In this document: one piece after another, positions 7,017 through 63,993 of the stretch
Layout: every line of letters starts with the position of its first letter
Position numbering within the stretch: position 1 is the first letter of the stretch
Origin: Macrostomum lignano
Taxonomy: Eukaryota
Assembly (NCBI GenBank): GCA_002269645.1
Contig: NIVC01001215.1
Location: 1-64,000, forward strand
Direction: 5' to 3'
Length of the DNA stretch: 64,000 bases
The notes under the pieces: model-generated
The model's input: only the letters and a program-made list of their open reading frames with translations
Databases searched by the model: none
Told to the model about the DNA's origin: nothing
Translations under genes and position numbers: made by a program

Positions 7017-7215
7017 CAGTGGCACAATCAGGGGGGTGGGAGGTGGTTGCCCCCCTTAGAATGTTAGATGGAGATTGGAGACCCAAATAAAAAATCAAAG
7101 GGGGGACCAAGTGAATTTTTGCCATAAACAGAGCCACCCCTCTGCCTCCCATCTAGGGACTTTACCCTCCAAAATCTGCCCTTCCCCCCTAAAAAAAATT
7201 CTGGTTGCACAACTG
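7017..7215. mobile_element. Degenerate hAT-type MITE
   Basis: Imperfect TIRs CAGTGGCACAATCAG / CTGGTTGCACAACTG; flanks gcagagag and gcaaaaag match at 6 of 8 positions (old TSD). Confidence 0.55.
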
Positions 7216-13996: not shown

Positions 13997-16900
13997 CATC
14001 GACAGCTGGAACAGCCTCCAGAAGATCGAGCCTGCATTTTCATGGCCGGCTCTCTTGAGGCCATCGTGGAAGGCCTGGCGCCACCGGACCACCTGGAGGA
14101 CAAGGTGGACTGCCTGCACATGAACATTCTGCTCACCACCTATCCGGCTTTTGCTAGCACCGAGGAGCTGCTGCAGATCGTATTTGACAAGTGAGTTTGC
14201 TCATGTGCTGCAAGTGGTCAAGACTCAATACGTTATATGCTGAATACTTATTATTCAAATCAGTAGTAGTACATCGGTGGATTTTTCTCCCAGGCTCCGC
14301 AACGGCAGCAGCCGGGTGAACTCGGAGCGGCTGCGCGCGGCGCTGCTGGTGACGCTGAATGCTTGGCTTGCCGAGCCGTTCCAGGAGCTGCTTCGCCTGC
14401 CGCCGGAGTTTCGCGAGCTCCGCCTGCTGGCCGAAGGCTGCGAAGCGGCAGCCGCGGCTGCGGAGACCAGCGAGACCGCTGGCCGGCTCGACCTCCTGGC
14501 GAGGCTGGCACGCCGGCGGCTTGAAACTTTTGGCGCCGCCGCTGCTGCGGAGGCTTCGACTGCCGAGGCGGAGGCCGCAGGTTGCGGCGGTCAGGGCGGG
14601 AGGCGGCACTGGCGGAGGGTGGAGTGGGACGAGATCGACGACCTGCAGGTGGGTTTGGCCGGGTGGATTTTTAGAGTTTAGGGCCCACATCGGGATCTGC
14701 AGCTAAGCCCAGCATCCCTATGAGCTGATGGGGATCTGCAGCTAAGCCCAGCATCCCTATGAGCTGATGGGGATCTGCAGCTAAGCCCAGCATCCCTATG
14801 AGCTAATGGGGATCTGCAGTCGCACCCAACGCCTATGTTAGTGGCTTCGTATGCCACGAAAACTTGTCTATGGCTAAGAGAGCCTAGACTACAAAGTGCT
14901 GTATAATAAAGGGCAGTTAGCAAATAAAAGGAAGGAAAAGGAAGACGCGAGTTGTATCGAGAATGTACCGAGTGTCGGTAAAAATCAAAGTTTTAATCTT
15001 CCAAGTCTTTTGTGAGTTATGTTGTCGTAAAAGCCCACGACGATAACAATGGCGACGAGGACGCCAACTATGGAACTACTAGACGAAGGCGAGGATCCCC
15101 AAAGATGGAATCAGCGCTTCGAAATATGTGCCTCTCTAAACGACTGGAAAGATGACAAAAAGCGCAATGCCTTCCTGGCCTTGATTGGTAAGAAGACATT
15201 CAATATGCTCGCTGACGCTATTGTTCCGTACAAACTTGAGAAGAAGACGTATGATTATCTAAGCCAACTTCTCAAGAATCAAGTCAGAATGGAAAAGCCA
15301 ACGATTGCATGCAGATACGAATTTCATAAAGCAAAACAAGAGGCCAATGAAGACATTGTTACATACGGCAGAAGGTTAAGGCAGCTTTCTGAAGACTGCA
15401 GATTCGGAGAGGACGAGGGCAAGAACCGACTCCGCGATCAGTTCATATTTGGACTGTATAATAAAGAAATCCTCCGCAAGCTACTTGAGGAGGATATTGA
15501 GAAACAGACATGGGAAAGAGTTACGGCAGTGGCGACAGCCTGCGAAGCGGTGCAAAAGAGTGAAAAGCATATATCTGGCTCCAACGTACTACAAACACGG
15601 CATATCACAAGTCGGCAGCAGCCACAGAGAAGTGGTGAGTACCGGAAGAGCCAACCTACAAGGAATGCAGAGGGAAGAAGTAGCAAGGAGATTACTTGTC
15701 TTTGCTGTGGAAAAGTTGGCCATATGAAAACTAAGTGTCGCTTCAAAACACGAAAGTGTGATAAATGCGGTAAAGAAGGCCATTTAAAAAATATGTGCAA
15801 AGCTTCGAAATTCCGAAGTGACCAACGAGGACCATCAAGAGTGAGATTGATGCAAGAGCAACGGCAGCGTGAACAGTTGTCGGACGAATAAAAGTGCAGC
15901 AAAATCTTCTCATTGTCAGCCAGTAAGAGTAGGATTTCTAAGCGTGTGCAGATCAACGGTCAGTCAAGAGTGTGGGACGATCGTGGATATGGTATTTGAT
16001 ACTGGCGCGGATGCTTCACTGATGTCTATGGACACCTTCACCTTCAGACGGTTGGCCAAGCCTACAGAAGTAGTATCTACTGGTAGGAGTTTTAAAGACT
16101 TTCAAGGAAACTGCGGCCTTTGACTTAACTTAGCTGCAGGGTGGTCCGTAGACACAGCGGGGAGGCGAGGGTCGCCCATTCCGCTAGCCCCTGAAGGCCC
16201 GCAGACAGGCAGAGGCGTGGGGCCGGTCAGGGTGGTCCGCCGGTCCGTCCTGCAGCGTGATCTTCCGTTGGGAAGAAACTGGCTCGTCTAGTCGCCCGAA
16301 GGAACTGGATGAGCCGTGGGATGCTGTCGGGCTGGCAAACCTCGTCAATGGACGGGTTCGGCCCGAGGTAGCGTAGCCGGTCTCTGTTAAAGAAAGGGCA
16401 GTGACAGACAAAGTGCTGAGCATCTTCATTGTCGCACTCGCAAAAGGGGCAAATTTCGCTCTCGAGGTCGCCTCGGAGGAAGCAGTGCCTGGCGAGGTAG
16501 CCATGGCCGGTAAGGGTCATGACAAGGGCTCGAATATCCTTCCGATTCTGGTTCAGAAGGATGTTTCTGAGCCTGTGAGACGGGCAAGGAACCGCGGCAC
16601 GAGATTGCCGGCAGTTTTGGGTGCCCGCCCATCTGTCCCTGTGGAGGGAGTCAGCCCAGTCGTCGATCTGACGATTGATGACTGTCAAGGGCATAGGGAC
16701 CAGGGGGGCAGGGCCGAAAAAAGAGCCAGAGCCGCCCCTCTTGGCGAGGGTGTCTGCCAGCTCGTTCCCCGGAAACCCTGCGTGCCCTGGGATCCACTTC
16801 AGCCTGACAGTATTGCTTCTGGCCAGGAGGTTGAGCTGCCGGGCGCAGTCGGCGACTGTCCGGGAGTTCGTTGTGGTGTGGCAAAGGGCCTGTAAGGCCG

Positions 16901-19900
16901 CTTGGCTGTCGGAGTGGATGACAATAGTCTTTCCTCTCGTAACCTTGGCGTTTAGCTCTGCAGCGCAAGAGCTGATGGCAAGGACTTCGTTCTGGAAGAC
17001 TGTGGAGAGTCTACCAGTGTGCTGGGCATGCGTGGCAATTACGCGGCCGTTGATGATGATGCAGACCCCAAAGCCGGCGCGACCGTCTTTGATGGATCCG
17101 TCCGTGTAGCAATGGACCTCCTGGAAATTCCAGTGGTCATTGGCAGCATCCCTAGAGGGGATGGTGACCTTGTAGCGCTGAAAGAGGTTGAGAGTGCGGG
17201 GTTCGCCGTCAGATAGGACGTGGAGCCCGCCGCTGTCTCTCAAGTCCTTGAGGCAGAGGTCAGCGTGGGGCAGAAGCTTGCGCTTAGCCATGGCCCTATG
17301 GGGCTGGATTCGAATGCCAGCGTCAGCTAGACGGCGGGCAGTCTTAGCCGCTTCCCTGCGGACAAAGATGTCCAGCGGAGGAATGTTGAGGAAGGCGTTG
17401 AGGCCATCGTAAGGAGCAGACGGAGGGGCGCTCATGATCGTGCGACAAGCGCGCCCTTGCGCTCTCCTGAGAGCCTCTAGACAGGTCTTTATCTGCAGGG
17501 CGCTAGCCCAGATCAGGCCGCCATACGAGATAGCGGGCCTAACCATTGCAGTGTAGATCCACCAGAGGCGCTTGGGGGTGAGCCCCCAGGTGGTGCCGAC
17601 GGCCCTGCGCAATTGCGCGAGGACTGCGAAGGCCTTTTTGGCTTTTGTTTGAACGTGGGGAGACCAGTTCAGCCTGTGGTCCAGGGTAATACCCAGACAT
17701 TTAGTCTGCTTGCAGAAGGGGATTTCCCTTCCGTAAAGCGTGAGCGGCCGAATCTGCCACTTGGTCCTGCTGGTGAACATGATCGCTGCGGTCTTAGTCT
17801 CAGAGAGCCTTAAACCACAGCGGTCCGCCCATTGCTCAGCAGCGTAGATGAAGTTCTGAAGAAGGTCCCTGAGGGTATCAGGGGACGGACCAGATGCCAC
17901 CGCGGTGACATCGTCCGCATATCCAACTTTCAGAATGGGGTCAGGCCGAACATCCCGGAGGAGCTCATCGATGACCATATTCCAGAGAACTGGAGACAGC
18001 ACCCCACCTTGCGGGCTACCTTTGCAGACGGGGACCGTCCTCTGGTAGCCCAGCAGACTGGCGGTGGCCGTGCGATGGCTGATCATGTACATGATCCATC
18101 TGGTGAGATGTGAGTGCGTTAGCCTCTCACAAAGAGCTCTTCGGAACGCCTCAAAGAGGACGTTATCGAAGGCGCCAATGATGTCCAGGAAGATCCCCAG
18201 AGCAAAGCCACTACCAAGCACGGCCTTCTCGAGTTTATCGACCAGGACGTGCAGCGCGCTTTCAGTGGAGCGACCCGCCCGAAAAGCGTGCTGGTTCTCG
18301 CTGAGAGGTTTGTTCTTCAGCTCAACAGAGAGAAGGCGCCAAAGCACCAGTCTCTCCATCAGCTTGACCAGGGAGGAGGTCAAGCTGATCGGTCTGAAGG
18401 ATTTGATAGAATGGTAGTCCGGGCGGCCTGGCTTAGGGATAAAGATCACCTTTGCCTCGGTCCATGCCTGCGGGACATAACCAAGCGTGATGCATGCCCG
18501 AAGAAGGCTGCAAAGTTTGCGCAGGAAGCCTGGGCATTTAACCGCCTCTCTTAGAAGGGCCGGTACAATGCCGTCGGGTCCTGGGGCTTTGAAAGGCTTG
18601 AAGGAATTTGCCGCTCTCACAATGCGGTCCTCCGTGATGATAGATGCAGCCAGCGCGTGACCTCCCTCCGAGTGATCCGGAGTGGTCTGGTTAGCTGGCT
18701 CGTTAGGGAAAAACGCAGTGAGCATTACATCAAGCGTTTCCCCTGGGTTGTCCGTGGACGTACCGTCGGTGCGTTTGACCGAGGAGAGCTTAGACATTTT
18801 GTCCAGCGTGAGCGCTTTCACAACTCTGGAGGTGGGGCGTGAGCCCTCTAGCTCCTCACAGTATTGTCGCCATTTTTGAGCCTTTTTGAGCCAAACTGCG
18901 GCCAGTCAATGGTTGCTGTGAAGTTCAATGGGATCACAGCTGAGCTTTCCATCTTCATTGTGGACAATTCAAGTGCTGCAAGCATCTACGGCCTCGAGTG
19001 GATGCGTAAGTTGGAACCGGAGCTCAATATTTATCAGGTCAAAAACTTTAAAGCACACCTAACGCTGAAGGAAGGTTCAACGCCTGTGTTCTTCAAGCCA
19101 AGGCCGCTGCCATATGGTCTGAGGCACAGTGTGAAGAAGAGTTGGATAGAATGGAAAAAGATATGATTTTAAAGAAGGTAGACCAGAGCAAGTGGGCCAC
19201 GCCAATTGTCTGCGTTAGGAAACAAAATGGAAGGATAAGACTCTGCGGCGACTATAAGGTGACTAAATAAATTTCTCTGTGACATGGTTTCCACGACTCC
19301 TAGCATCGAGGACGTGCTTCACCGTATGGAATAGGTGCAGTACTAGAGCTATCCAAGGGACCTGTCTTGTTCATCTCCAAGACTCTCAGCCAGGCCGAGC
19401 GAAATTATGCACAGATAGGGCGTGAAGCTCTAGCGATTGTGTGGACCGTGAAGCGACTACGCAAATATCTGTTCGCTCGAAAGTTTACTTTGGTGACTGA
19501 CCACCGTCCACTTAAGTATATATTCGATCCAGCCAAGAGCATCAATAGTCTCGCAACGGCTAGAATTCAGCGTTGGGCAGTTGCTCTTATGTCTTATGAC
19601 TACGAAGTAGAGTGCCGTCGGTCAGAAGAGATTCCAGTAGCCGACGCACTGTCCAGATTAAGATCAACGAAGGCCGATTTGCAACAATTTGACGTAAGCT
19701 CAGTTCAGGACACCCTACTTGTGGAAAAGTTGTACTTGTGGAAATTTCTTTTTTGATCGAAAAAAAGAAATTCGTCAACAGTCGCTGAAGGACGCTATAA
19801 TGCGAAGGCTTTTCGCCCAAGTCAAGCATGGTTGGACCGAGACTGGAAGACGTCAGCTTCAGGAATATGCCAGGTTCGAAAATGAAATGTCCATTAAAAG

Positions 19901-22900
19901 CGGGATAGTGTAACGCGGAAGCAGGATCGTTGTTCCAACAGCGTTGCGCAAAACTGTGCTTAGCGCATTACACGAGGGACATCTGGGTGCCGAGCGGATG
20001 AAGTCTATAGCACGACCGTGTGTGTGGTGTCCGTCAGTTGACAGGGACATTGAACACCTGTCCAAGACATATACCAATTGTCAGTCGCAAAAAGATCACG
20101 CTAAGTGCGCGTGGACACCATGGCCTCAAGAAACGGAAAAGTGGAGCCGAGTTCACATCGACTTCGTTGGACCTTTAAAGACTTTGTAAAGACCCACGAC
20201 GATAACAGCCTATATGGGATTTGAAAACCCGTCTTTAGAGGTCGAGTGGGATCCCTTTTTAACCGGGAGTTTAGGATCTCATTCTATCTCTACCCAGCAT
20301 CCTTATAAGTCGATGAGGACCCGGCTGACGCCGCCCCCATTCCGCAGGTGGCGGAGCAGCTAACCCGCCTGGACGCCCGCCTTTTCGAGTCGGTGCGGCT
20401 GCACGAGTGCCTGGGCTCGCAGTGGGGCCGCCACCGCCGCAGCGGCTGCTCGCCCAGCGTCGACGCTACGGTGCAGCAGTTCAACCGGGTGTGCAGCCTG
20501 GTGGCCAGCCAGGCGCTGCAGCCGGGCCTGCAGCCTGAGGACCGGGCGCAGCTGCTGAACAGGTGGATCCACATCGCCCAGTACCTGCGGAGAGGCGCAG
20601 CTTCTCCTCCCTGTGCGCCATCGTCTGCACGCTGAACCTGCAGTGCCTGCGGCGTCTCAGCCGCGTCTGGCGCCGCGTGCCGTCGGCCAGCCGCGACCTG
20701 CTGGCCGAGCTGTCGCAATTCGCCAACGCCGGCGAGAATTTCCAGGCGCCGCGGCGCGCCATGCACTGGGAGGGCACCGGCAAGGCGCTCAGCCGCCAGC
20801 TGTCCGTGCCGGGCGGCGTCGGCGGCATCGGCAGTCACCGCACCGCCTCCAGCGTGAGCCGCTTGGGTTGACTGGCGGGATGGAGTGACTGGCGGGACGG
20901 AATGACTGGCGGGGTAGAGTGACTGCTAGGATTGAGTGACTAGCAATTGAGATACATCCGGAGTGACTGGCTGTAGAGGCAGAATCCGGAGTGACTGGCT
21001 GTAGAGACAAAATCCGGAGTGACTGGCAGTAGACGCAAAATCCGGAGTTACTGGCTATAAAAATCGGCAGAGAAGCGAAATCACTGTGGCTTCGCCTCCC
21101 CCCCCGCCGCAGCTGTCTCTGAGCGAGTCCTCCGGCACGGTGCCCTATCTCGGCACCTTCCTGACGGACCTGGAGGGGCTGCACTCCGCATTCCCGGAGC
21201 GAGTCCACGGTGGCCTCATCAACTTCGACAAGCGGCGCCGCGAGTACGACATCCTGGCCCGCCTGCGGCTGTACCAGGTCACCTGCCGGCAGTACCAGTA
21301 CTGCGAGGATGCCAGGTTTGAGCACTGGCTCAGCACCATCGAGCTGCTCAGCGATGAGCAACAGCAGCTGCTCAGTCTGGAGATTCAGCCGGAGCGGAGG
21401 TTTGTGTCCACTGTGTGACCTGCGTGACTGCGGTGTAACCTGCGTGTCTGCTGTGTGACCTGCGTGTCTTCTGGGTGATCTGTGTCTGTCTGCTGTGTGA
21501 CCTGCCTGTCTGCTGTGTGACATGCGTGTCTGTGGTGTGACCTGCGTGTCTGCTGGGTGATCTGTCTGTTCGCTGTTCGCCTGTTCGTCTGTTCGCTGCA
21601 TCTTCTAGGCTACATGTCGGCGAGGGCCTTCTGTATAGAATGAAGTCATGTATTATTTTTTTGGTTTAGAATCAAGTTCTCAAGTATCAAGTTTAGATAC
21701 AACTATACATGCACCATCATTCAACTAAATATCAATAAAATCAGCATGAATTAGAAAATTTTGTGTCGCCTTACCTGTTCTCACTAAGCCGCGGAATCTT
21801 CTTTGAAGGTGGTAGCTGCCGATCTTCGTCCTCGAAGTCCAGCTGCTCTGCTTCAAAGTCACATGGCCGCTTCATTATATTTCTTTTCTGGTGCTTTTAA
21901 AACTATTTTGTTTGGAGAAGTACTCTCGTAGCTCTTCGATGAAAGCTGAAAGTGAACAGAATTAGAAAAAAATGTTTGTTAAAAACTACAGTACAGCATT
22001 GTTTGGCAGTAAAAGTCGCACAGCTTAGCCTATCTTTCCTAAAGAGTTTGAAGATCCTTTTTGAACCAAAGAGAAATAGAAGAGAAGTAAGATCTTAGGC
22101 CTAAAACATAAAAACATAAAAACAACTATAAGAGCACACTCTAGAAGGCAGATTGTAGGAGAGATTGTAGGAGTATAGCTATAAATTGAATAGAAATGAA
22201 ATGAAGCAGAAAAGTACTAATTAATCGTATATAGATGCAATTATTAAACATGCAAAAAGCAAAATGCAACAACATTCTTAAAAAAATTAGTAATGAATGG
22301 ACGTACGGTGCTAAAAATTTAATTATATACAATAACACTTGGTTTACAGCTTACAGAGTAGTGGACGAGTAAATAATTGGCACCTAATAAATTACAACTA
22401 TAAAAAGTGGAATACAAATATGAAATCGAAATTAGTCGAAAAGTACAAAGTCGTTACAACACAACATCACACAAGTAAATAAATGAAAGTTAACAAGATA
22501 AGATAGTTAATTAAGCACAAGGTTGATACAATTTTTTGGCGCACTTTTCCACGATGAAAATTTGTTCATCGAAGTCCCCTCAGTCGAGTGACAACTTGCG
22601 AGTAATAAGCCGCTTGCTCGGCTTAATTGGGTTCTTGCTCTTCGGCCCGTTGTTCGCCAAGAGCTCTTTAATGATGGACTTGATTTTTCTCCCAACGTGT
22701 TCATCCTCTCAATCGACGCCTCCGCCTTTGTAGAATTTCCTCGCTTCGGGAATTTCCGCTTCTCCTCTGAAAAACAACGCTGTTCGCTGGCTATTTTCGT
22801 TAGCCAAATCGTCGTCTGAGCCGCCGCAGTCGTTCGCTAGGTCGTCGGAACAGACCTGGCTCTCGTTGGGATCAGCAGGTGGTCTAAGGGCGGATTTGCC

Positions 22901-38268: not shown

Positions 38269-41200
38269 TCACATGATTGACTCAGAATCATTTGCGCCAG
38301 CCATAGCCTTCTTGTTAGCCTCAGCCTCAGCCTTAGCCTCAGACTTAGCCTTAGCCTCAGCCTTAGCCTTGGCGCTGTCCACAGCCCTGGCAACCGCGGC
38401 ATCGTCCAGCAGCAGGCGGGTCTCCTCGGCGAACTCCGCGGCCCGGTGCGCCAGCTCGTAGACGCTCCTCGGAGCTCCATCGGCGGTGCGCAGCCGCTGC
38501 ACCTTCTCCTCCAGCGCGTCGATCTCCAGCTGCATGGCGTGCTTCTCCTCGTTGACCGACCAGACCCACAGGATGATCCAGGCGCCCTCGCTGCTCAGAA
38601 TCCTGTGCTCACGCTCAACCAGGCACCTGGCCTCCTCATTCTTGTTGTCCATCGCCGCTGGGAAGAAGCTCAACTTTTTGTTTCTGTCGAAATGCTTCCT
38701 GAGGTCTTCGCTTAGCGACTCCACAGTGCATTTGCTCGACCCGGCTTGATACAAAGCGACCTGCTTCTCCATTTCGGCTTCTGAGTGGTCTTTGTAGGCG
38801 CTGCTCTTCTTGTACGCGAATGGAAAGTACATCACAGGGCGAAAGTGCACACTTGACTGAACTTCCAAATTGAAATTCTTCCAGGCGTGGTCCACGGCCT
38901 TGTGCGAGTTCTCCAGCGTGACCTTGAGCACCTTTGTCTCTTTCTCGCGCTCTGCTTTGATGTGATGCCGCGTCACTTTAAGCAGATCTTTTCGCGGGTA
39001 CTTGTCCAGCCCCAGAGCCTTCTTGACCTCCTTGCAGAGCGTCTTGAACTTGCGCTCGGCATCTTGTTGGGCCTTTCTGTACTCATCGTGCATCTGGCTG
39101 CTGGATTCCCCGTCCGAGCCCTTGGCCGGTTTGTACTGCATTCGCTTCTTGATGAAGAACGAACTGCTGCTGGTTTTTAAGTTCAGCAGCCGAGCTGCCA
39201 GCTCGTACTGCGCCTGCTGGTGCAGTAGTGGCTCAGTCTGAGGAGCATCTGGCACAGCCTGGGGAACATCTGACACAGCCTGAGTAGCAATATCTGACAC
39301 AGCCTGAGGAGGAGCATCTGACACAGCTTGAGGAGGAGCATCTGACACAGCGTGCAGCACAGCTAGTAAGCTTTCGGCAACACTATCTCTTGTTGTTCGT
39401 TCCTTCACATCTTGAAGAAATTTCTTGACTAAGTCAGCAGCATTCTTGCACTCCAGCAAAAGACATTTTACCAGCCCATCTTGCTTCTCCTTGAAGCTCA
39501 GCCGCTGCCATCGGCTCTCCAGCATGAACAAAACTGAGTCCGCAATGAGCGCACTCCTGTGATTCAGTTTTTCGTCGAGTGTCTCAAACAGTTTTATTGC
39601 TTCGTCGAATTGCTCTGCTTCTAGAAGAAGAATTCCGAGCTGCTCAGTAGACAGCTGGTGATTCGGTTCTGCCTGAAGGCACTCTGTGTAAGCTCGTATC
39701 GCCGATTCAGTGAGCTGTCGGGCCCCTTCAAAGTTGCCCACTTTTCTTTCGCACTTCGCCCGGACAGACTGGCGCAGAGCGTGGAAACATTTCGCCTCGA
39801 AGTCTGTCTTGTGCCCAAGCAGAGTCTCCAAATTCCGCCATTTGAACGGACTGAGGCAGCCTCTGACGTTCGGCACCTCATCCTGAGCATACTCATTCAG
39901 AGCCCATGCGATGCACTCCACACCCTGAGCCACCCGACCCACCGTGGCCAGAAAGTAGCCCTTCTCCGCCAGTATTTGGGCTGAGTGGGACGGCCTCAAA
40001 TTTCTCAGCCGCAGCGAGTCGTAGCGCTGGCAGATCCAGGCGACGTGCTCCTCCTTGGTCCGAGCTGTGCCAGCGGTGGCTCCGATCCCAGCTGCAGTCA
40101 GCACGCCATAAAATGCGAAAACACTATGGCGGCCAGGATTCCTGCGGCTTGAATTGAGTCGGTGGCAACAATGGCTACAGCAACGGCCAGGACCGCCATA
40201 GCAGAAATGATTCCTGGGTGGAAGACGGCCAAGCTGACTCCAGACTCTGTGTCCGCGCTTGACACGGCTGGGTCCTGGATCAAGTCAATCAGATATTTCG
40301 CCGCCCAGATGTTCCTCTCAGGAGCTGCTTTCCTGAAGTTCTTGATAGCCAAGCCAAAGTTTTTGTTGCTAAGGTGCCAGCGCGCCACTTGGTCATAAAA
40401 ATCCGGGCTGTCGTGAGATTCGCCAGGCTGAAACTTTAAAACAGTTGCAACCACCTGCTCCACAGAGCGGATGATCTCGTTTTCTTCTGCAGTTCTCTCT
40501 GACTTCGCGTTCTTGCCGCCTCTCAAGTCCCATAAAATTCTGCAGACCTTGAGGCAAAGCCTGAATGTCTCTACCAGTCCCGGATCTGTCTTGGAGCGGC
40601 AGGAATTGCTGGCGCTCTCCACCAGCTCCAAGCACTTGCTGTGCATTTGGTCCTTGCTGATGATTGCTTCGGCGTACCGTGCCTGGAAAAGAGGTCGCAC
40701 CTGGTCGTAGGCCGGCTTGCTCGCGCTGGCTTCCGCTTTTTCCCATAGCTTCAGCTCCGGACCGTCAGCCGAGCTGATGAAGTCTCGGTTCCTGCGAATC
40801 CTGGATCTGACAATCGCGAGACCGAAGAGCCAGAGAAAGTTCTCCGGCTCTTTCGCATTTGCTTCTTTTAGAAAGTCTTCGACTTCGAAGAGCTTTGAGT
40901 AGCCCAGGCGCAGCTTGATCCAGCCGATGGATCCGTGGAACATAGCGGATGTGTCGGGTCGGCCCCACTCAGCCTCCAACTCAGCGACATCATCTTTCCA
41001 ACCTACTGGGAAGCCGTTGCAACTTTGCAGTAATTTTATTCTCAGCCGAGCTGTCTTGATCAGGTATGTAGCGTCTACGAAATTGAAATAATTTGGAGAA
41101 TTTTGCAGCTTCTCGGCTTCAGTCAGGATCTCCAGACTCTTCGGCAGGTCCACAACAGCCTGGTGAGTGTGCAGCAGCGCAAGAGCCACCAGGTGCACCG

Positions 41201-41306
41201 TCTCCAGCCACGGCTCGCTCTGCCTCTTCCACTTGAACTTCTCAATCAAGTCTGTGACGTCACTGAGCTGGCTGATGTCGGGGAGCCGCTGGAAGTGGCT
41301 GTCCAT
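38269..41306 (-). CDS. IFIT-like TPR protein with central two-TM segment and HEPN-like C-terminal domain (~1012 aa if one T is restored at 40118-40121)
   Basis: DSHF, LVALALLH..SLEILTEAE and GWIKLRLG..FLKEANAKEPEN..FGLAI parallel IFIT N-terminal TPRs; ORFs 40098-41306 and 38269-40104 join by a one-base change. Confidence 0.7.
39240..39355 (-). repeat. In-frame 24-bp repeat (AVSDAPPQ-like x4) within the IFIT-like gene
   Basis: gagcatctgacacagcctga variants. Confidence 0.85.
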
Positions 41307-41715
41307 GACGTTCGAAGCGGTCTCGGCTCCTCCAGTGCGTTGGTTGCGGAGTCGGCCGAAAGCATTGCAGATAGAGAGCTGCTCACAGCAGATATGTACT
41401 GCTGCCCTGTACTCAGGACTCTGCTCAAGACAGGAACAATAGAGACCTCTGCCGCCAGTCTCAGACTGCAGTGCAGTGCAATTGGGCAGCTGGGGGTTGG
41501 CATACGGTTTCTATTGCTAGCGGCAGTGCAGTACAGTACAGCACAGTACAGTACAGTACAGTACACCGCTGCGGAGTGAAAACACAGACGGGAACTTCAT
41601 TCCAGCCAGCGACTGCAGCTAGGGGTGTGAGATTGTAGCACACTTTTGCTCTCCAAATTTGATTTCACTGGTTTAGGTGCATAACTATTTTCTTCTATTA
41701 TCTTTGAAACTAAAT

Positions 41716-42430
41716 GCTCGGAGATTACAGTGCGTGAATGTCTTATCACAGCTTGTGAATGCTCGGAGATTACCGTGCGTGAATATTCTATCACAGCTTG
41801 TGAATGCTCGGAGATTACAGTGTGTGAATATCCTATCACAGCTTGTGAATGCTCGGAGATTACAGTGTGTGAATATTCTATCGCAGCTTGTGAATGCTCG
41901 GAGATTACCGTGCGTGAATATTCTATCACAGCTTGTGAATGCTCGGAGATTACAGTGTGTGAATATTCTATCACAGCTTGTGAATGCTCGGAGATTACCG
42001 TGCGTGAATATTCTATCACAGCTTGTGAATGCTCGGAGATTACAGTGTGTGAATATCCTATCACAGCTTGTGAATGCTCGGAGATTACCGTGCGTGAATA
42101 TTCTATCACAGCTTGTGAATGCTCGGAGATTACAGTGTGTGAATATTCTATCGCAGCTTGTGAATGCTCGGAGATTACCGTGCGTGAATATTCTATCACA
42201 GCTTGTGAATGCTCGGAGATTACAGTGTGTGAATATCCTATCACAGCTTGTGAATGCTCGGAGATTACCGTGCGTGAATATTCTATCGCAGCTTGTGAAT
42301 GCTCGGAAATTACAGTGTGTGAATATCCTATCACAGCTTGTGAATGCCCGGAGATTACAGTGCGTGAATGTCTTATCACAGCTTGTGAATGCTCGGAGAT
42401 TACAGTGTGTGAATATCTTATCACAGCTTG
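41716..42430. repeat. 45-bp minisatellite, about 16 copies
   Basis: atgctcggagattacagtgtgtgaatatcctatcacagcttgtga. Confidence 0.96.
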
Positions 42431-43794: not shown

Positions 43795-46420
43795 ATGGCC
43801 GAAATTGAGAAGCTGCTCATCTGCGCTGCTGTCTTCTGTAAGCTCGAACTCCAGTGCTTATTCTATGCGGATTTTACCTACTAGATTTACAGACTCAATT
43901 TGAATAATTCTTTCCTCTTTCAGTGCTCCAGGCAAACCTGGCAAGCACCGACTGCTACAACGGCACTCACTTTAACGTCAGGCCGGGTTTTCCGACAAAA
44001 ATGCCCAAGTGCACCCCGACCACGGCCGGAAATTGCTACGAGATTTTGCACAAATTCACTGAGTCTTTGGTGAGTGTTTGGTCGTATTTGCAGTGACCAA
44101 CCTGCCGCTGGCTCCCCTGCACTGCTGCTGACTCCCTGCACTGCTGCTGGCTCCCCTTCACTGCTTCTGGCTCCCTGCACTGCTGCTGGCTCCCCTTCAC
44201 TGCTTCTGGCTCCCTGCACTGCTGCTGGCTCCCTGCACTGCTGCTGGCTCCCTGCACTGCTGCTGGCTCCCTGCACTGCTGCTGGCTCCCTGCACTGCTG
44301 ATGACTCCCCTGCACTGCTGCTTGCTCCCTGCACTGCTGCTGGCTCCCTGCACTGCTGCTTGCTCCCTGCACTGCTGCTGGCTCCCTGCACTGCTGCTGG
44401 CTCCTCTCAAGCTCAGCTTCAACACCTGTTGATTTCAGAGACTGTTTATGGGCTGCGACAAATGCCCTGACGCAATAAAGAGCGTGAAGTACGACTTTGG
44501 AGCAAAAAAGTTAACCATTTCCGACTGCTCGGAGACCTCCGGCTCCGGCCTGTCCAACACCAAGTGGGGGAACAAGATTAAGAGCTATGTTCTCCAATCT
44601 GAGGTCTGCTCATTTGAGGACGCAACCGGCTCGAAAGGCACCATTCTCTGCAAGCCCAAGGAGAATTGCATGGCGGCCGTCATGTCGACCACCCCGAAGG
44701 TAAGAGGGCTCAGTGAGCAGTAGGATGAGACCTGCAATAGACCTTGCAAGCCACCCTACAAGCCACTCTACAAGCCACTCTACAAGCCACCCTAAAAGGT
44801 ACCCTACAAGCCACGCTACAAGGTACCTTATAAGCCACCCTACAAGCCACTCTACAAGCCACCCTACAAGCCACTCTACAAGCCACTCTACAAGCCACCC
44901 TACAAGGTACCCTACAAGCCAACCTACAAGGTACCCTACAAGCCACCCTACAAGCCACCCTACAAGCCACCCTACAAGCCACCCTACAAGCCACTCTACA
45001 AGCCACCCTACAAGCCACTCTACAAGCCACTCTACAAGCCACCCTAAAAGGTACCCTACAAGGTATCCTACAAGCCACCCTACAAGGTACCCTACAAGCC
45101 ACCCTACAAGCCACCCTACAAGGTACCCTACAAGCCACCCTACAAGCCACCCTACAAGCCACCCTACAAGGTACCCTACAAGCCACCCTACAAGCCACCC
45201 TACAAGCCACTCTACAAGCCACCCTACAAGCCACTCTACAAGCCACTCTACAAGCCACCCTAAAAGGTACCCTACAAGGTACCCTACAAGCCACCCTACA
45301 AGGTACCCTACAAGCCACCCTACAAGCCACCCTACAAGGTACCCTACAAGCCACCCTACAAGCCACCCTACAAGGTACCCTACAAGCCACCCTACAAGCC
45401 ACCCTACAAGGTACCCTACAAGCCACCCTACAAGCCAACCTACAAGGTACCCTACAAGCCACCCTACAAGCCAACCTACAAGGTACCCTACAAGCCACCC
45501 TACAAGCCACTCTACAAGCCACCCTACAAGCCACTCTACAAGCCACTCTACAAGCCACCCTAAAAGGTACCCTACAAGGTATCCTACAAGCCACCCTACA
45601 AGGTACCCTACAAGCCACTCTACAAGCCACCCTACAAGCCACTCTACAAGCCACTCTACAAGCCACCCTAAAAGGTACCCTACAAGGTATCCTACAAGCC
45701 ACCCTACAAGGTACCCTACAAGCCACCCTACAAGCCACCCTACAAGGTACCCTACAAGCCACCCTACAAGCCACCCTACAAGGTACCCTACAAGCCACCC
45801 TACAAGCCACCCTACAAGCCACTCTACAAGCCACCCTACAAGCCACCCTACAAGGTACCCTACAAGCCACCCTACAAGCCACCCTACAAGCCACCCTACA
45901 AGCCACCCTACAAGGTACCCTACAAGCCACCCTACAAGCCACCCTACAAGCCACCCTACAAGCCACTCTACAAGCCACTCTACAAGCCACCCTACAAGCC
46001 ACCCTACAAGGTACCCTACAAGCCACCCTACAAGCCACCCTACAAGCCACCCTACAAGCCACCCTACAAGCCACCCTACAAGCCACCCTACAAGCCACCC
46101 TAGAATCCACCCTACAAGCCACCCTACAAGCCACCCTACAAGGTACCCTACAAGCCACCCTACAAGCCACCCTACAATCCACCGTACCGCCCTGCCTGCC
46201 TGTTCGGCAGAAGCGGTTCCGCGGCTGCGCCAGCAACTGCAAGGAATTCAAGCTGTCGGACTGTCGGGAGTGCAAAGAGAAAAGCTGCGACCACCCAGCG
46301 TTCGACTCGGCTGGCAATTACATAAAAAAATCCGGCGCCATGCAGCGCGCCGCCAAGACTCAAATGGCGCTCGGCGTGCTGTTCGCCGCTGCGGTTCGCT
46401 GCGTCGTGGCGCGAATTTGA
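43795..46420 (+). CDS. Secreted, probably GPI-anchored Cys-rich Ly6/uPAR-like protein with two domains (219 aa); exons 43795-43837, 43924-44069, 44439-44699, 46211-46420
   Basis: Manual splice gives 660 nt in frame; signal peptide; ...RGCASNC..DCRECKEKSCD; hydrophobic C-terminal tail. Confidence 0.75.
44100..44400. repeat. 19-bp intronic minisatellite (gctgctggctccctgcact)
   Basis: Direct reading. Confidence 0.93.
44740..46180. repeat. 12-bp intronic minisatellite (ccctacaagcca / ccctacaaggta)
   Basis: Direct reading. Confidence 0.97.
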
Positions 46421-46659
46421 GCGCGCCGCTGAGATGCGCACTGAAACGGACTCTAAAAACTTGGAATAATTTGAAAGAACTTTGAAACCCCAACTTTTTT
46501 CTCAGTTTTTTGTTTAAATAAGCCTGACTAATTTTTCAGACTACTGCAGCGAAAATCTGAAAGCATTTTAAACGAATTTCTAACTATTTCCTTTACAGTT
46601 AAAGTCGACCTCTTGCTGTTGAATTCGACTCATACGTAACAGCCTCTCTGTAGTTAATA

Positions 46660-47420
46660 AACAGGTCTCTGGCCTCTATAAACAGATCTCTCTGGCCTCT
46701 ATAAACAGGTCTCTCTGGCCTCTATAAACAGATCTCTCTGTCCTCTATAAACAGGTCTCTGGCCTCTATAAACAGATCTCTCTGGCCTCTATAAACTTGT
46801 CTCTCTGGCCTCTATAAACAGGTCTCTGGCCTCTATAAACAGATCTCTCTGGCCTCTATCAACTGGTCTCTCTGGACTCTATAAACAGGCCTATGGTTTT
46901 TATACACAGGCCTCTGGCCTCTGTAAACTGGTTTCTGTGGCCTCTATAAACTGGTTTCTGTGGCCTCTATAAACAGGTCTCTGGCCTCTATAAACAGATC
47001 TCTCTGGCCTCTATCAACTGGTCTCTCTGGCCTCTATAAACAGATCTCTCTGGCCTCTATAAACGGGTCTCTCTGGCCTCTATAAACAGGCCTATGGTTT
47101 CTATACACAGGCCTCTGGCCTCTGTAAACTGGTTTCTGTGGCCTCTTTAAACTGGTCTCTGTGGCCTCTATAAACTGGTCTCTGTGGCCTCTATAAACGG
47201 GTCTTTGTGGCCTCTATAAACTGGTCTCTGTGGTCTCTATAAACAGGCCTCTGGCCTCTGCAAACTGGTCTCTGTGGCCTCTGTAAACTGGTCTTTGTGG
47301 CCTCTATAAACTGGTCTCTGTGGCCTCTATAAACGGGTCTTTGTGGCCTCTATAAACTGGTCTTTGTGGTCTCTATAAACAGGCCTCTGGCCTCTGTAAA
47401 CTGGTTTCTGTGGCCTTTAA
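46660..47420. repeat. 20-22-bp minisatellite (ctctggcctctataaacagg)
   Basis: Direct reading. Confidence 0.93.
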
Positions 47421-48826: not shown

Positions 48827-48994
48827 TCGACTAACTGATTGACTGATTGATTGACTAGTTGATCGATTGATCTATTTATTAATCGATTGATACGTTGATA
48901 GATAGATAGATGGATATCTAGCAACTTCGTTAATTTGAGTGTTAGAAATGCTTAGTCAAGGCTAAAGTATTGGCATGAAAACTACATTTTTCTT

Positions 48995-49490
48995 GAACTG
49001 TCACTGTTATCCCACCGGTGCCACTATTAATTGTCACTGTTATCCCACCGGTGCCACTATTAAATGTCACTGTTATCCCACCGGTGCCAATATTAATTGT
49101 CACTGTTATCCCACCGGTGCCACTATTAATTGTCACTGTTATCCCACCGGTGCCGCTATTAATTGTCACTGTTATCTCACCGGTGCCACTATTAATTGTC
49201 ACTGTTATCCCACCGGTGCCACTATTAATTGTCACTGTTGTCCCATCAGTGCCACTATTAATTGTCACTGTTATCCCACCGGTGCCACTATTAATTGTCA
49301 CTGTTATCCCACCGGTGCCACTATTAATTGTCACTGTTATCCCACCAGTGCCACTATTAATTGTCACTGTTATCCCACCGGTGCCACTATTAATTGTCAC
49401 TGTTGTCCCACCGGTGCCACTAATTGCCACTGTTATCCCACCGGTGCCACTATTAATTGTCACTGTTATCCCACCAGTGCCACTATCGGT
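48995..49490. repeat. 33-bp minisatellite (ttaattgtcactgttatcccaccggtgccacta)
   Basis: Direct reading. Confidence 0.95.
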
Positions 49491-50414
49491 GTGCAGCAAA
49501 ATTGTTCACCAAATTTCAGCTTTGCATCAAAATCTTCTGGAGCTGCAGACAATGGCTGCAGATCTTAATTAAAAAAGGTAAAATATAAAAAGCAGTCTGA
49601 AGTTGCACTGTAATAAATTTTGCCAATTGCTCTCAGGCTATTCTAAAGCTAACCTTTCGCTGCAAGCACTGTCTTTACCTCTCTCTTTTTCCCTAGCAAA
49701 ATCCTGAGACCATGCAGATATGCAGCAAAGGAATTGTCAGCCGGCAAAAACCAAGCAACCCTCAGGCAGGCAGGCAGTGACGCCAGCCTCCACGCGCCCT
49801 GCTACCAGCGGCTTCAAAAAGCAGATTAAGGGTGAAGACACTCGGCAGGCGCGCAGAGGAGGCTGGGGGCGCGGGCCCACCTGCCCGACTCTCAAAGCTC
49901 CCAGCCACCCCACACCTGCAGTCAACTGAGGAGGAGAGCAGCCGAGGACAAGCCGGGTTGCCATCCCGTGGCTCTGCCCCCGGGGAAAGAAAAAGTTCTG
50001 CTCAAGTCTCCGTGAAGAGAGAGGGATGAAGCGGATATTGTTCCAGCATCTCCCGGCAAAAATTGCCCTCTCCACAGTTTCCTGCAGCATCTCCAGCTCC
50101 CCGGCTCCGTGTCGCGCCGCTTACCCACTTTCTTCATCCGGCTGAGCCCAGAGTACGGATCCCAGCTCCCTGAGCTCGCGACTTCTCACAGACCGCCTCC
50201 CCAGCCTCCGCTGTTGCCAAGGCCACATCGGACACAGAAGCTGCAAGACAAAGCCGAGGGTAAGAGAAGGAGGCCGGGGGAAGGAGGGTTGCAGCGGCTT
50301 CTCGGGATGAAGAGGCGGGCAGGTGGCCGATCTCGCAGCAAACTCTGAGTGAGCAGCTGCCGTAACTGCCCGCCAAACTGGGCCGAGACGTCAAGACGAC
50401 TGCAGCAGCCCGCC

Positions 50415-56230
<5,816 letters not shown>

Positions 56231-56269
56231 CCGGCTGAAGCTGCTCCGATTGGACGAACATGCTCCGAT

Positions 56270-56990
56270 TGTCTGTGTGTCTCAGTCCGTCTGCCTGTCT
56301 GTGTGTCTCAGTCCGTCTGCCTGTCTGTGTGTCTCAGTCCGTCTGCCTGTCTGTGTGCCTCAGTCCGTCTGCCGGTCTGTGTGTCTCAGTCCGTCTGCCT
56401 GTCTGTGTGTCTCAGTCCGTCTGCCTGTCTGTGTGTCTCAGTCCGTCTGCCTGTCTGTGTGCCTCAGTCCGTCTGCCTGTCTGTGTGCCTCAGTCCGTCT
56501 GCCTGTCTGTGTGTCTCAGTCCGTCTGCCTGTCTGTGTGTCTCAGTCTGTCTGCCTGTCTGTGTGTCTCAGTCCGTCCGCCTGTCTGTGTGTCTTAGTCC
56601 GTCCGCCTGTCTGTGTGTCTCAGTCCGTCTGCCTGTCTGTGTGTCTCAGTCCGTCTGCCTGTCTGTGTGCCTCAGTCCGTCTGCCTGTCTGTGTGTCTCA
56701 GTCCGTCTGCCTGTCTGTGTGTCTCAGTCCGTCTGCCTGTCTGTGTGTCTTAGTCCGTCTGCCTGTCTGTGTGTCTCAGTCCGTCTGCCTGTCTGTGTGT
56801 CTTAGTCCGTCCGCCTGTCTGTGTGTCTCAGTCCGTCTGCCTGTCTGTGTGTCTCAGTCCGTCTGCCTGTCTGTGTGCCTCAGTCCGTCTGCCTGTCTGT
56901 GTGTCTCAGTCCGTCTGCCTGTCTGTGTGTCTCAGTCCGTCTGCCTGTCTGTGTGTCTCCGTCTGTCTGCCTGTCTGTCAGCCCATCTAT
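56270..56990. repeat. 26-bp minisatellite (gtctgcctgtctgtgtgtctcagtcc)
   Basis: Direct reading. Confidence 0.96.
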
Positions 56991-57594
56991 CTGTCTCCTC
57001 CTTATATAGCTTATAACGTTTTATAAAAATGTAACTGTGTCAAACGGGAACTTATTATTGTTGCTTGTCCAAAGTTTCCCAGCCTATAATTATTCTTTTG
57101 CTTCATCAATTCTTCAATCTGCTGAACTTTCCTGCCGTCAAACATTTTGATAATTCAATTTTAAAACGGATTTTCAAGGCTTTTTCTAGACTTGCGGCCC
57201 GTCCTGGAGAGTTTCTATCCGAATTGCGGAGCGCAAATTTTTGCAGATGTCCCAGAAAAGTCGATCTGTCCAAAATGCACCGCGGTTTCCATCGAAGTAA
57301 ACCAGTAAAATATTTTAATCCCCACCGCGTCACTGCTACGCCGTGTGCAGATTTCAAAATCGAGTCAGTTGTAAAGGCGAACCAATCCAAATCCATTTAA
57401 GGCATCTGAAGTGCAGGTGCCGCGGTAGCCAGCGCAGTTAAATTTCAAATTCATTGGAAATTTTACCATATGCAGCTGCACTTTCACTGCCGGGAGATTA
57501 CGTCCGAATTTTCCCAGGGTACCCCTCGGACTTCGGCTGGGAGTTTCTAAACGAAGAGTTTGAATCAGAGCAGCAGGATGATGAGATACAGATA

Positions 57595-61025: not shown

Positions 61026-63993
61026 CTACTTGGCCTCGGCCTTTGGCGGGTTGATCTTGACCACCAGCACCAGGTAGTACAGCCAGTAGAAGCAGTTGTA
61101 CAGCAGGAAGCAGGCGGGAAACAGGAAGCGGCTGTACGCGTCGATGTCCGAGTCCGGCGCGGGCACTGGCGAGGCTGGCGGCGCGCCGCCTTTGCCGCCG
61201 CCACTGACGCCGCCGCCGACGCCGCCCTCTTCAACGCTGACAGCCAGGAGATCCTCGAGCTCCTCCGGGAAGCCGGGATAGCCGTGGCCGCCGCCGATGT
61301 GGCCGCACGGCAGGCCGGGCGGCGGGCCGCGGATGACGGCGAGGCGCTGCAGCTCGGAGCGGACGACGTTGCGGATCTCCTGCTGCCAGCTCTCCATCTT
61401 GGTGCGCCGCGCCCGGAAGGAGGCCACGGCGAACTCGATGAGGGCGCCGATGACGAACATGATGCTGGCGATGATCCAGATGTCGATGGCCTTGATGTAG
61501 GCAACCCTGCGAAGGCGGCGGGGCAGAGGGTTAGTCAGGTAGACTGAATAAAAAAGGCACTGCAGAGCCCTGTTTGATATTTTCTGCTTTTTTCAACACA
61601 ACCTCAGTGTTGTGCCCTTTTAGCAGTGTTGCATTCTCAAGTTTATCAGTTTAGAAGTTTGCAAAAATCAGCAAATTCTCGGAGTTGAAAATCCCGATCT
61701 CTCCTCTGCAAATTGGCCTGCCGCGACGCGGTCCTTGTAGAAAAATTTCTGGGGCACAGGGCGAATTGAGAAGGCAAACTGAGCAAACTGAGTGACTCCT
61801 GAGGCTGCTTAGGCCCTGCCCTGCTCCATAAATCAGGAGCCACCACAGCAAGCAGGCTTGAAAGCTGACGAAGCCACAGGAAGAAGCAGCTTAGACACTT
61901 AATCTGAGATCAGCGGAGGGGATTTATGACGCCCTCATTCTGCACTTTCTGCCGAACTCAGCGATAGGACCAGGATTAAGCCAGACTGAGCAGCTCAGCC
62001 CAGAGTGCTGGCAGCCCCATCAACCCCGCAGCAGCCCCAGAGACTCCCCGGACTCGTGCCGTGGGCGATAAAATTGAGTTTTTAGCAGTCTTTAATCAGC
62101 CAGCGAGATCTGGCAGCCAGTGCTAATGAGAACTGCTCAGCCCGGACTCGCCGGCGCCAAGGGCTCCGTGAGGACTTTGATCTCACCGGCCTCACCCTCG
62201 ATCCTTGCCCAGATTCTTTATTACTCATTGAGGCGAACAGTCAAGACCTCTTTAATCGGGCACCCTTTGTGTGAAGTTAGCGGTCGCTTAAAACAGTCGG
62301 AAAAGGAGATTCATTTGATTAATCACTTTGTAGCAGACCTGTGTGAGACCTGCAGAACTGTGTGAGACCTGCAGAACTGTGTGAGACCTGCAGACCTGTG
62401 TGAGACCCGCAGACCTGTGTGAGACCTGCAGAACTGTGTGAGACCTGCAGAACTGTGTGAGACCTGCAGAACTGTGTGAGACCTGCAGAACTGTGTGAGA
62501 CCTGCAGAACTGTGTGAGACCTGCAGAACTGTGTGAGACCTGCAGAACTGTGTGAGACCTGCAGAACTGTGTGAGACCTGCAGACCTGTGTGAGACCTGC
62601 AGAACTGTGTGAGACCTGCAGAACTGTGTGAGACCTGCAGAACTGTGTGAGACCTGCAGAACTGTGTGAGACCTGCAGAACTGTGTGAGACCTGCAGAAC
62701 TGTGTGAGACCTGCAGAACTGTGTGAGACCTGCAGAACTGTGTGAGACCTGCAGAACTGTGTGAGACCTGCAGAACTGTGTGAGACCTGCAGAACTGTGT
62801 GAGACCTGCAGAACTGTGTGAGACCTGCAGAACTGTGTGAGACCTGCAGAACTGTGTGAGACCTGCAGTCCCTCCTACCTGTGTGAGAGCTGCAGACCTG
62901 TGTGAGACCTGCAGCCCCCTCCTCCTGTTGTATCAGCACCTGCTACTTGGGCAGATTGGCCATCAAGGTAGATGCCTAGGAGAGTCTGCAGTCCCTACCT
63001 GGGCAGGTTGGCCATCACGGTGGATGCCTGGGTGAGGATACCCAACAGGGTGAGCAGGCCCAGCGTAACCCGAGCGGGCACGGCTTCTATATTGACCCAG
63101 AAGCTGAGCCAGCTGACGGCAATGATGAGGATGGCGGGGATGTAGGTGCCGGCCAGGTAGCTGCTCAGCTGCCGCTCCAGCTTGAAGATCGCCTTCAGGC
63201 ACGCGTAGCTCCCTGTGCTGGTCGCGCTGCCCTGCGTGCAGTCCTCCACAATGGCGAAGTCGGGTGTGTTGAACTCGGAAATCTGCATGGAGCCGTCCAG
63301 CTCCACCGGGTCTTTCAACCCGTCCCGCTTCCACTTGAACAGCAGGTTCCTCGTGGTGTATCCGTAGCTGCCGATGTTCACGAAGCACGTCTGTGTGTCC
63401 ATGGGAAATGTCTGCAACTGCATCTGGCACGAGAACTTCATGGTAACCTTCTGCGAATACAGGATCTGCCCGTCGGGCTCAACTCTGATCAGATAGTTAG
63501 GCTGAGTCATGGTGTGCAGGTAACCCTCCTTTCCATTACGGAAGAACAGGTCTGGAAGCCACAGGTGCTCCTTCTTGGCGGGGATGGCGATGGACTCGTT
63601 GTAGAAACTGAAGTCTTTGCGATGATCCCAGCGCAGCCGCGTGTCCTTCCAGAACTGACGCAGGTACATGTCCAGCGTAAACTCCATGTTGATGACGTCC
63701 ACCTTGTTGATGCTGAGAATCTTCATGTTGACGTCCACGGCCGTGGATGGCTGCACCGGCTTGCTGGAGCCGGACACGTCTGGGGCGGGCTCAGCCGGCT
63801 GGCCGTCCGGCTTCGGCGGCATCTCCACCGGCCGCTGGTGCTTATTGTAGCCGCGGAAGATCGCCTCCACGATGCGGTCCACGATGTTGGTGTAGTTCGG
63901 CCGAACTGACCCGCTGGTCGGCTGAATCTCCTCGGTGGCGAACACAGCAGCGACCGCCAGCAGGGCTGGCAGCAGGCGGCACCAAAAGTGCAT
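61026..63993 (-). CDS. Cys-loop ligand-gated chloride channel subunit (flatworm GluCl / GlyR-like); exons 63993-62999 and 61506-61026
   Basis: Signal peptide; WLPDLFFRNG; Cys-loop CQMQLQTFPMDTQTC; loop C cysteine pair; anion-selective PAR before M2; joined LPR-VAYIKAIDIW; M4 IDAYSRFLFPACF. Confidence 0.93.
62335..62930. repeat. 19-bp intronic minisatellite (gacctgcagaactgtgtga)
   Basis: Direct reading. Confidence 0.96.

Follow-up and report, generated by a model that had tools for sequence, protein, structure and literature searches.

An IFIT-homologous protein family with a conserved C-terminal domain that is not a recognisable HEPN domain in the flatworm Macrostomum lignano

The closest described relatives of the protein family considered here are the vertebrate IFITs, for which solved structures of IFIT1, IFIT5 and IFIT2 are available (PDB 4hot, 3zgq, 5udi, 4hou and 4g1t). 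IFITs are commonly regarded as proteins of jawed vertebrates that are tied to interferon. A survey of the family found IFITs in jawed vertebrates and no true IFITs in the invertebrates examined (PMC3688568). The second group relevant to this work comprises the HEPN RNases, including the KEN domains of RNase L and IRE1, Cas13, Csm6/Csx1, HepT and the DZIP3-like HEPN domains of invertebrate immune proteins. In a 64,000-nucleotide stretch of Macrostomum lignano DNA (positions 1 to 64,000 of contig NIVC01001215.1, assembly GCA_002269645.1; hereafter the window), a preliminary description made from the sequence had recognised an IFIT-like protein with a HEPN-like putative RNase domain fused to its C-terminus, in an animal without interferon. 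We identified the locus, at positions 38269-41306 on the minus strand, as a gene of ~1,000 codons, apparently intronless, that occupies two open reading frames (ORF1 and ORF2) with one frame change. Our preferred reading, to which we give a probability of roughly 0.6, is that the locus belongs to a small, fast-diversifying family of IFIT homologues in M. lignano and at least two other eukaryotes, with a novel, non-HEPN C-terminal domain (CTD) and a putative RNA-directed function.

Joining ORF1 and ORF2 by a one-base frame correction gave a protein of ~1,012 residues, which in the family alignment was colinear throughout with relatives of 869-1,117 residues and which also aligned, at 43% identity, with a paralogous M. 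lignano locus on contig NIVC01000672.1 (L004). The architecture is fixed in the family and consists of an IFIT-type N-terminal tetratricopeptide repeat (TPR) domain, a second TPR block, an all-helical CTD of ~285 residues and a variable tail. The second block, in which Pfam TPR_19 and TPR_2 matched weakly at ORF2 residues 133-181 and to which consensus TPRs were also matched by the family profile, ends in a conserved segment, L-I-A-D-S-V-L ... L-L-E-C, which comes before the CTD in every family member. All four peptide strings quoted in the preliminary description were found exactly, on the minus strand and within the single 611-codon ORF2, and its proposal of a distinct domain fused at the C-terminus was borne out by 13 relatives in which that domain is conserved. 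The ORF1 protein is on record for this contig and assembly; the ORF2 protein had no entry in the searched protein collection.

Judged by sequence profiles and by its predicted fold, the N-terminal region is homologous to IFITs, in agreement with the preliminary description. A family profile of the first ~250 residues (A4) had IFIT5 (3zgq_A) as its only significant sequence match in the PDB (E 1.3e-4), with profile positions 6-158 corresponding to IFIT5 residues 15-174 and the motif LECHFTW included, and a longer family profile (A3) matched IFIT1 (E 7.5e-4; profile positions 5-163 to residues 6-167). Elsewhere the A3 profile matched designed consensus TPRs, and across the two profiles IFIT1 and IFIT5 were the only natural PDB proteins with a colinear match from the N-terminus. 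An AlphaFold2 (AF2) model of residues 1-350 of the window protein (pLDDT 85, pTM 0.85) was compared with the PDB by Foldseek; IFIT5 came first (E 3e-5), and IFIT5, IFIT1 and IFIT2 together accounted for 15 of the 19 top matches. Against the N-terminal fragment of IFIT1 (4hou_A) the model had a TM-score of 0.69, normalised to the target, with a root-mean-square deviation of 5.0. Generic TPR proteins (OGT, CTPR, Tom70) also scored against this model, with similar or weaker E-values.

The likeness to vertebrate IFITs takes in L-E-C-H-F-T-W, a K-G-x4-F-G...Y..A block, a colinear N-terminus and a predicted TPR fold nearest to IFIT5 and IFIT1, and both groups are multi-copy and lineage-expanded. Sequence identity between the flatworm protein and IFITs is ~14-16%. 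The flatworm proteins differ in being about twice as long (~2x), in carrying the extra 285-residue non-TPR CTD and in having RGG or CCCH tails, which occur in no solved IFIT; their host also lacks, to our knowledge, an interferon system, as the preliminary description had supposed. Full-length relatives start with LECHFTW or VECHFKW, whereas the window copy starts M-D-S-H-F-Q-R-L-P-D, in which the motif is degenerate (DSHFQRL), and it differs further from IFITs in a hydrophobic insertion. At the positions of IFIT5 E33 and K150, which we take to be RNA-pocket residues, the family has Glu or Asp at the former, while the latter is Cys in the majority of members, with Arg in the window copy; the N-terminal 160 residues are the part alignable by sequence.

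Relatives of the CTD were sought with phmmer, using 261 residues of the CTD region in an exhaustive scan of 1.84 billion representatives. This identified 13 relatives with E-values from 6e-59 to 9e-4, five of which were M. lignano paralogs and the rest single-ORF genes on long eukaryotic contigs from two ENA metagenome assemblies (ERZ25074608 and ERZ26859043). In word-seeded searches the CTD alone gave no match, ORF1 matched only itself, and the CTD alignment found only P0003 among the matches listed. There were no prokaryotic proteins among the 13 phmmer relatives, and searches with the motif A-H-x-A-A-E-F-[AV]-E and with tblastn found no relatives in 185,579 prokaryotic species genomes or in JGI metagenomes; the parallel drawn in the preliminary description with bacterial HEPN-like proteins therefore found no counterpart in any of these scans.

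Conservation was read from an alignment of 14 sequences (the window protein and its 13 relatives), with residues in ORF2 numbering. Identity to the window protein was 20-30% across the alignment, the closest paralog (P0002) reaching ~48-50% over the CTD. Six residues were invariant (W509, W513, K521, H522, H553 and E560) and eight nearly so (R498, E499, N518, A552, A555, A556, E557 and F558). The N-x-x-K-H motif of the preliminary description, which lies in AWIILWVWSVNEEKH, that is (AW)ILWVWSVNEEKH, was accordingly conserved, as N-x-[DE]-K-H within W-x3-W-x4-N-x-[DE]-K-H, and the Pro of its VMYFPF string was fairly conserved in the context Y-x-P-[FH]-A; its FFP was kept in some M. lignano paralogs only. 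Two conserved blocks had escaped it, E-R-E-H-R-I-L and Y-E-L-A-H-R-A-A-E-F-A-E-E. The latter has the family consensus Y-[DE]-x-A-H-x-A-A-E-F-A-E-[EQ], is second in conservation only to W-x3-W-x4-N-x-[DE]-K-H, and falls just outside the range 38500-39100 proposed earlier, which does lie inside the domain and is narrower than it. Comparison of the window CTD with a paralog gave a pN of 0.34 and a pS of 0.73, the latter saturated, values that fit purifying selection over the long term. The AF2 model of the CTD, built from a 17-row alignment (pLDDT 76, pTM 0.78), was all-helical with 14 helices, three of them long (32, 30 and 27 residues). The CTD is a conserved domain of restricted lineage, always attached to an IFIT-like TPR array, and matches no known family or fold.

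The CTD is not a recognisable HEPN domain, and the HEPN annotation should not be used. It does share with the HEPN RNases an all-helical, C-terminal position on a repeat-bearing putative sensor and an invariant His with Asn four residues upstream, and the pairing of ligand-binding repeats with a C-terminal effector, here predicted, parallels the logic of RNase L. However, the Rx4-6H motif was lacking, with no Arg 4-6 residues before either invariant His (H522 or H553) in any of the 14 sequences. Upstream of H522, position -7 is Trp or variable, -6 Ser or variable, and -5, just before the Asn, is Val, Ile, His or Asp and never Arg; H553 has Arg or Lys seven residues before it only in the window protein, P0002, P0003 and P0004, all from M. 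lignano. The first motif put forward as HEPN-like, LENSHKAVDHAW, which had been compared to R-S-A-L-D-H, was not conserved: the family consensus is L-[RK]-[DE]-[SA]-[RK]-x-x-L-D-[R/A/Q/H], of which only L..[SA][RK]..L-D is kept, its final His is replaced by R, A, Q, D or L in other members, and the [RK]-x3-H of SHKAVDH was seen in no members other than the window protein and P0002. Searching the 14 members against Pfam-A with hmmscan (E<=5) yielded no family of the HEPN clan, and no HEPN match was obtained for the ORFs of the window in Pfam, PADLOC or NCBIfam, the last two returning no match of any kind. Nothing significant was found with the CTD family profile among PDB sequences, the best match being a de novo bundle (E 0.15). 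In a Foldseek comparison of the CTD model with 350,542 PDB chains the best E-value was 1.7 and TM-scores did not exceed 0.27 (TM<=0.27), with no HEPN, KEN, Cas13 or Csm6 structure among the 25 matches, so that the predicted fold matches no solved HEPN; judged by the refuting condition given in the preliminary description, a fold unlike HEPN, its HEPN assignment fails. The second invariant His, in the A-H-x-A-A-E-F-A-E helix, is not a HEPN feature.

The M. lignano paralogs include PAA78669.1 (P0002), PAA92423.1 (P0004), PAA75149.1 (P0016), A0A1I8HQA1 (P0005) and A0A1I8J6S6 (P0020), annotated only as 'hypothetical', 'TPR_REGION' or 'C3H1-type domain-containing'. They belong to the same family and have a CTD with all the conserved motifs, and the IFIT-like N-terminus is complete in P0004 and P0016; unlike the window copy, they lack the hydrophobic insertion and an AVSDAPPQ repeat. 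Directly after the CTD, P0002 and P0004 carry RGG/RG repeats, and P0005, P0011 and P0020 carry arrays of TTP-like CCCH fingers (C-x8-C-x7-C-x3-H, with CDFAHGxxEL). The family is made up of single-ORF genes, with at least five diverged paralogs in M. lignano and at least five diverged copies in the genome from a single sample (ERZ25074608, ~100x coverage), where tandem copies occur in one locus (L002). In being multi-copy, divergent, tandemly duplicated and encoded by single ORFs, the family follows a style common among genes of conflict or immunity.

Further observations were made on these relatives. After the CTD of P0005, P0011 and P0020 there are repeated modules of ~150-250 residues, composed of Cys-rich ribbons (CYxCA...LRSR[FW]...C..C..ILLVR) and CCCH fingers, for which no Pfam model matched. 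In L002 (ERZ25074608, ctg185430), tandem IFIT-like/CTD copies or fragments lie at 16666-18762 and 20276-20590, 4-8 kb downstream of P0012. In the paralogous locus L004 (6424-11198 of NIVC01000672.1), an IFIT-like N-terminus is encoded in frame 1 at 6424-7722, upstream of the annotated PAA78669.1, whose start at 8001 falls in another frame inside a paralog-specific insert of ~480 nt; the deposited PAA78669.1 model is therefore probably a truncated form of a longer IFIT-like gene, or an alternative start within it.

An RNA-directed function of the family is plausible, and paralogs add RGG or CCCH RNA-binding tails after the CTD. Of the 14 CTD positions conserved best, eight carry charged or polar residues (R, E, N, K, H, H, E, E) in a domain with an overall identity of 20-30%, and H553, E557 and E560, spaced i, i+4, i+7, share one face of a helix that is conserved on its other faces too. 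This suggests a conserved polar set on two predicted helices and one loop, comprising R498/E499, N518, [DE]520, K521-H522 and H553-x3-E557-x2-E560. Active sites and phosphate- or ligand-binding sites typically show a pattern of this kind, and on sequence grounds we favour such a site over a purely structural scaffold because 8 of the 14 positions are polar and because the three helix residues share one face. In the mechanism that we propose, the IFIT-like TPR clamp would bind RNA, with 5' ends as the probable target, and the bound RNA would be acted on by the CTD, or its binding coupled by the CTD to a downstream step. That the CTD might be a non-catalytic module for binding RNA, nucleotides or partners, or for assembly, has a little less than even odds; a novel type of hydrolase or RNase, with His/Lys/Glu chemistry suggested by the conserved residues, is the more doubtful of the two.

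Several points weigh against the preferred reading. Both AF2 models rest on shallow alignments of 14-17 sequences, and a clustering in space of the conserved CTD residues would be a prediction from sequence. A conserved 5'-ppp/cap RNA pocket like that of IFITs is at most putative, the alignment by sequence covering the N-terminal 160 residues. The isoelectric point of the domain ranges from 5.8 to 9.4 and is not consistently basic; as a proxy for RNA binding it was set aside as uninformative. A HEPN-like fold that had diverged far could escape Foldseek, whose sensitivity to all-helical bundles is poor, and [VI]-N-x-[DE]-K-H resembles the common HEPN form R-N-x-x-x-H without its Arg. Finally, the window copy is frame-broken, so this gene may make no full-length protein.

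The state of the window copy bears on the strongest alternative, that it is a pseudogene, a decaying duplicate broken by a frame-shifting insertion of roughly 180 nt, in which case the fusion protein would not be made from this copy. The only frame break of the gene falls inside the hydrophobic insertion, a stretch of ~60 codons rich in Ala, Val, Gly and Ile that resembles a two-span transmembrane hairpin, lies in the loop between the TPR blocks and is unique to the window copy. Three-frame translation puts the ORF1 stop at 40098-40100 and shows the ORF2 frame to be open from 40284; a run of four T lies at 40118-40121. The paralogous locus L004 has 16 ordinary codons at the insertion site, and its 5' 1.3 kb spanning the site reads in a single frame; the insertion is absent from all other relatives as well, and a search for a second copy of the inserted DNA found none. 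An intron was considered as a possible cause of the frame change; there are many frame-restoring GT/GC..AG pairs beside the insertion, none with a credible donor or polypyrimidine/acceptor context. This lack of good splice sites, the decay of the N-terminal C-H-F-T-W motif to S-H-F-Q-R-L and the missing ORF2 entry are all as expected of a pseudogene. On the other side, the ORFs are otherwise intact over 402 + 611 codons, every family-conserved CTD residue is kept, and the insertion is open in the relevant frames on either side of the break. The simplest repair of the frame is a one-base indel in the T run, and single-base indels in short T runs are a common error type in long-read assemblies. 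The break may stem from an assembly error, a disrupting insertion or an odd intron, and, independently of the readings of the CTD, we regard decay of this copy as possible, at under even odds.

A second alternative is that the CTD is a non-catalytic helical module serving oligomerisation, partner recruitment or extra RNA contacts, and that the protein, without any enzymatic activity, sequesters RNA or assembles complexes. Vertebrate IFITs are non-catalytic, and their C-terminal helices drive homo- and hetero-oligomerisation, as in IFIT1-IFIT3 (PDB 6c6k); the long helices predicted for the CTD are as in bundle or coiled-coil assembly domains, and neither Foldseek nor Pfam gave a likeness to any enzyme fold. 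The proportion of charged or polar residues among the most conserved positions at such low identity would, however, be unusual for a purely structural bundle, and we consider this alternative rather unlikely. Less likely again is that the CTD represents a new helical nuclease or phosphodiesterase fold, with N518/K521/H522 and H553/E557/E560 as its candidate site, which would bring recognition and destruction or modification of non-self RNA together in one polypeptide. The weakest is a divergent, Arg-less HEPN-type metal-independent RNase, a single-chain sensor and nuclease proposed by analogy with RNase L: the all-helical model, the Asn at -4 of an invariant His as in R-N-x-x-x-H, an adjacent invariant Lys that could give positive charge and the fusion to an RNA-binding-type TPR domain, with RGG or CCCH tails in paralogs, are in its favour, but with the defining Arg missing in 14 of 14 sequences, the first-motif His not conserved, no HEPN-clan match or HEPN structure retrieved and no prokaryotic relatives found, it is improbable.

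Other candidates were tried and rejected. Chance occurrence of the peptide strings was ruled out since the region is a conserved protein domain with 13 relatives. Derivation of the CTD from a diverged TPR or from duplication of the IFIT part was rejected, as hhalign against the TPR region of the family itself gave a probability of 0.1%, and for a viral origin the best Foldseek match in BFVD had an E-value of 2.2. Weak matches to Ntox15 (8fzz_A, E 0.92) and EAD11 (E 0.029) were judged to be noise, as were DUF1722 and DUF7203, which were obtained with single members, below the cut-off and in non-conserved segments. H-P-F-A-[FY]-K was not accepted as Fic/Doc-like, since the family does not conserve its His and lacks the G-N-G-R part, nor were E-R-E-H and E-E-K-H accepted as diiron or ExxH motifs, given the variation at their flanking Glu and His positions.

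What is new here is a protein of IFIT type whose C-terminal domain is undescribed, and not a HEPN fusion. The literature searched held no paper joining IFIT and HEPN in one protein and no relevant report of IFIT relatives in Macrostomum or planarians. A multi-copy family in a protostome without interferon, with an N-terminus homologous to IFIT1 and IFIT5, would place IFIT-type RNA clamps much deeper in animal evolution. The family, which always carries a CTD matching nothing known and often RNA-binding tails after it, is therefore a tractable candidate in the search for novel effectors of antiviral defence or RNA surveillance. RNA interference and transgenesis are available in M. lignano. If the CTD were an enzymatic effector, the protein would represent an interferon-independent, RNase-L-like solution on an IFIT scaffold, and IFIT-type sensors would predate vertebrates.

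The coordinates of the gene and its parts are collected in Table 1. The AVSDAPPQ linker occurs in the window copy and in none of the relatives, and the same holds for an 18-bp repeat (x 3.1, AKAEAK-type) at 38315-38370, in frame inside the low-complexity tail.

Table 1. Features of the IFIT-like locus in the window
Feature	Positions	Strand	Extent or character	Basis
ORF1	40098..41306	minus	402 codons; few-base overlap with start of ORF2, different frame	
ORF2	40104..38269	minus	611 codons	
IFIT-like N-terminal TPR domain	40272..41306	minus	joined-protein residues 1-345, within ORF1	profile matches, AF2, Foldseek
Copy-specific hydrophobic insertion	40060..40271	minus		three-frame translation, alignment to paralogs, hydropathy
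Second TPR-like helical block	39385..40059	minus	ORF2 residues 16-240	family alignment, weak Pfam TPR
Tandem repeat linker, A-V-S-D-A-P-P-Q	39240..39351	minus	24 bp x 4.8, in frame	Tandem Repeats Finder
C-terminal all-helical domain (CTD)	38380..39234	minus	ORF2 residues 291-575	phmmer, alignment, AF2
First motif, proposed as HEPN, LENSHKAVDHAW	38881..38916	minus		translation, alignment
VMYFPF(AYKK)	38806..38835	minus		exact string; translation
(S)FFP(AA)	38653..38670	minus		exact string; translation
E-R-E-H-R-I-L	38596..38616	minus	R498, E499 nearly invariant	alignment
AWIILWVWSVNEEKH, i.e. (AW)ILWVWSVNEEKH	38539..38583	minus	W-x3-W-x4-N-x-[DE]-K-H	
Y-E-L-A-H-R-A-A-E-F-A-E-E	38422..38460	minus	helix 258-284 of AF2 model	
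Ala/Lys/Glu-rich low-complexity tail and stop codon	38269..38379	minus		translation

Elsewhere in the window there are mobile elements, repeats and other coding sequences. A near-complete gypsy-type long terminal repeat (LTR) retrotransposon lies on the minus strand at 671-5735, with a gag ORF containing a zinc knuckle at 4728-5735 and a pol of 1,314 codons with reverse transcriptase, RNase H and integrase and an internal AAGSTAAT-type repeat. A non-LTR retrotransposon ORF of 864 codons, with reverse transcriptase and RNase H, occupies 16227-18821 on the same strand. Minisatellite arrays are found near the gene at 41713-42430, 44102-44404, 44747-46187 and 46657-47000, with units of 45 bp x 16, 19 bp x 16, 12 bp x 120, 23 bp x 15 and others, and further minisatellites at ~48940-49570, 50190-51550, 52270-54080, 56260-57020 and 62320-62940; these arrays yield long spurious ORFs in all frames. 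A large exon at 62995-63993 on the minus strand encodes part of a Cys-loop ligand-gated ion channel, covering a signal-peptide-like start, the ligand-binding domain and the first part of the transmembrane region, and C2H2 zinc fingers are also encoded in the 64-kb window.

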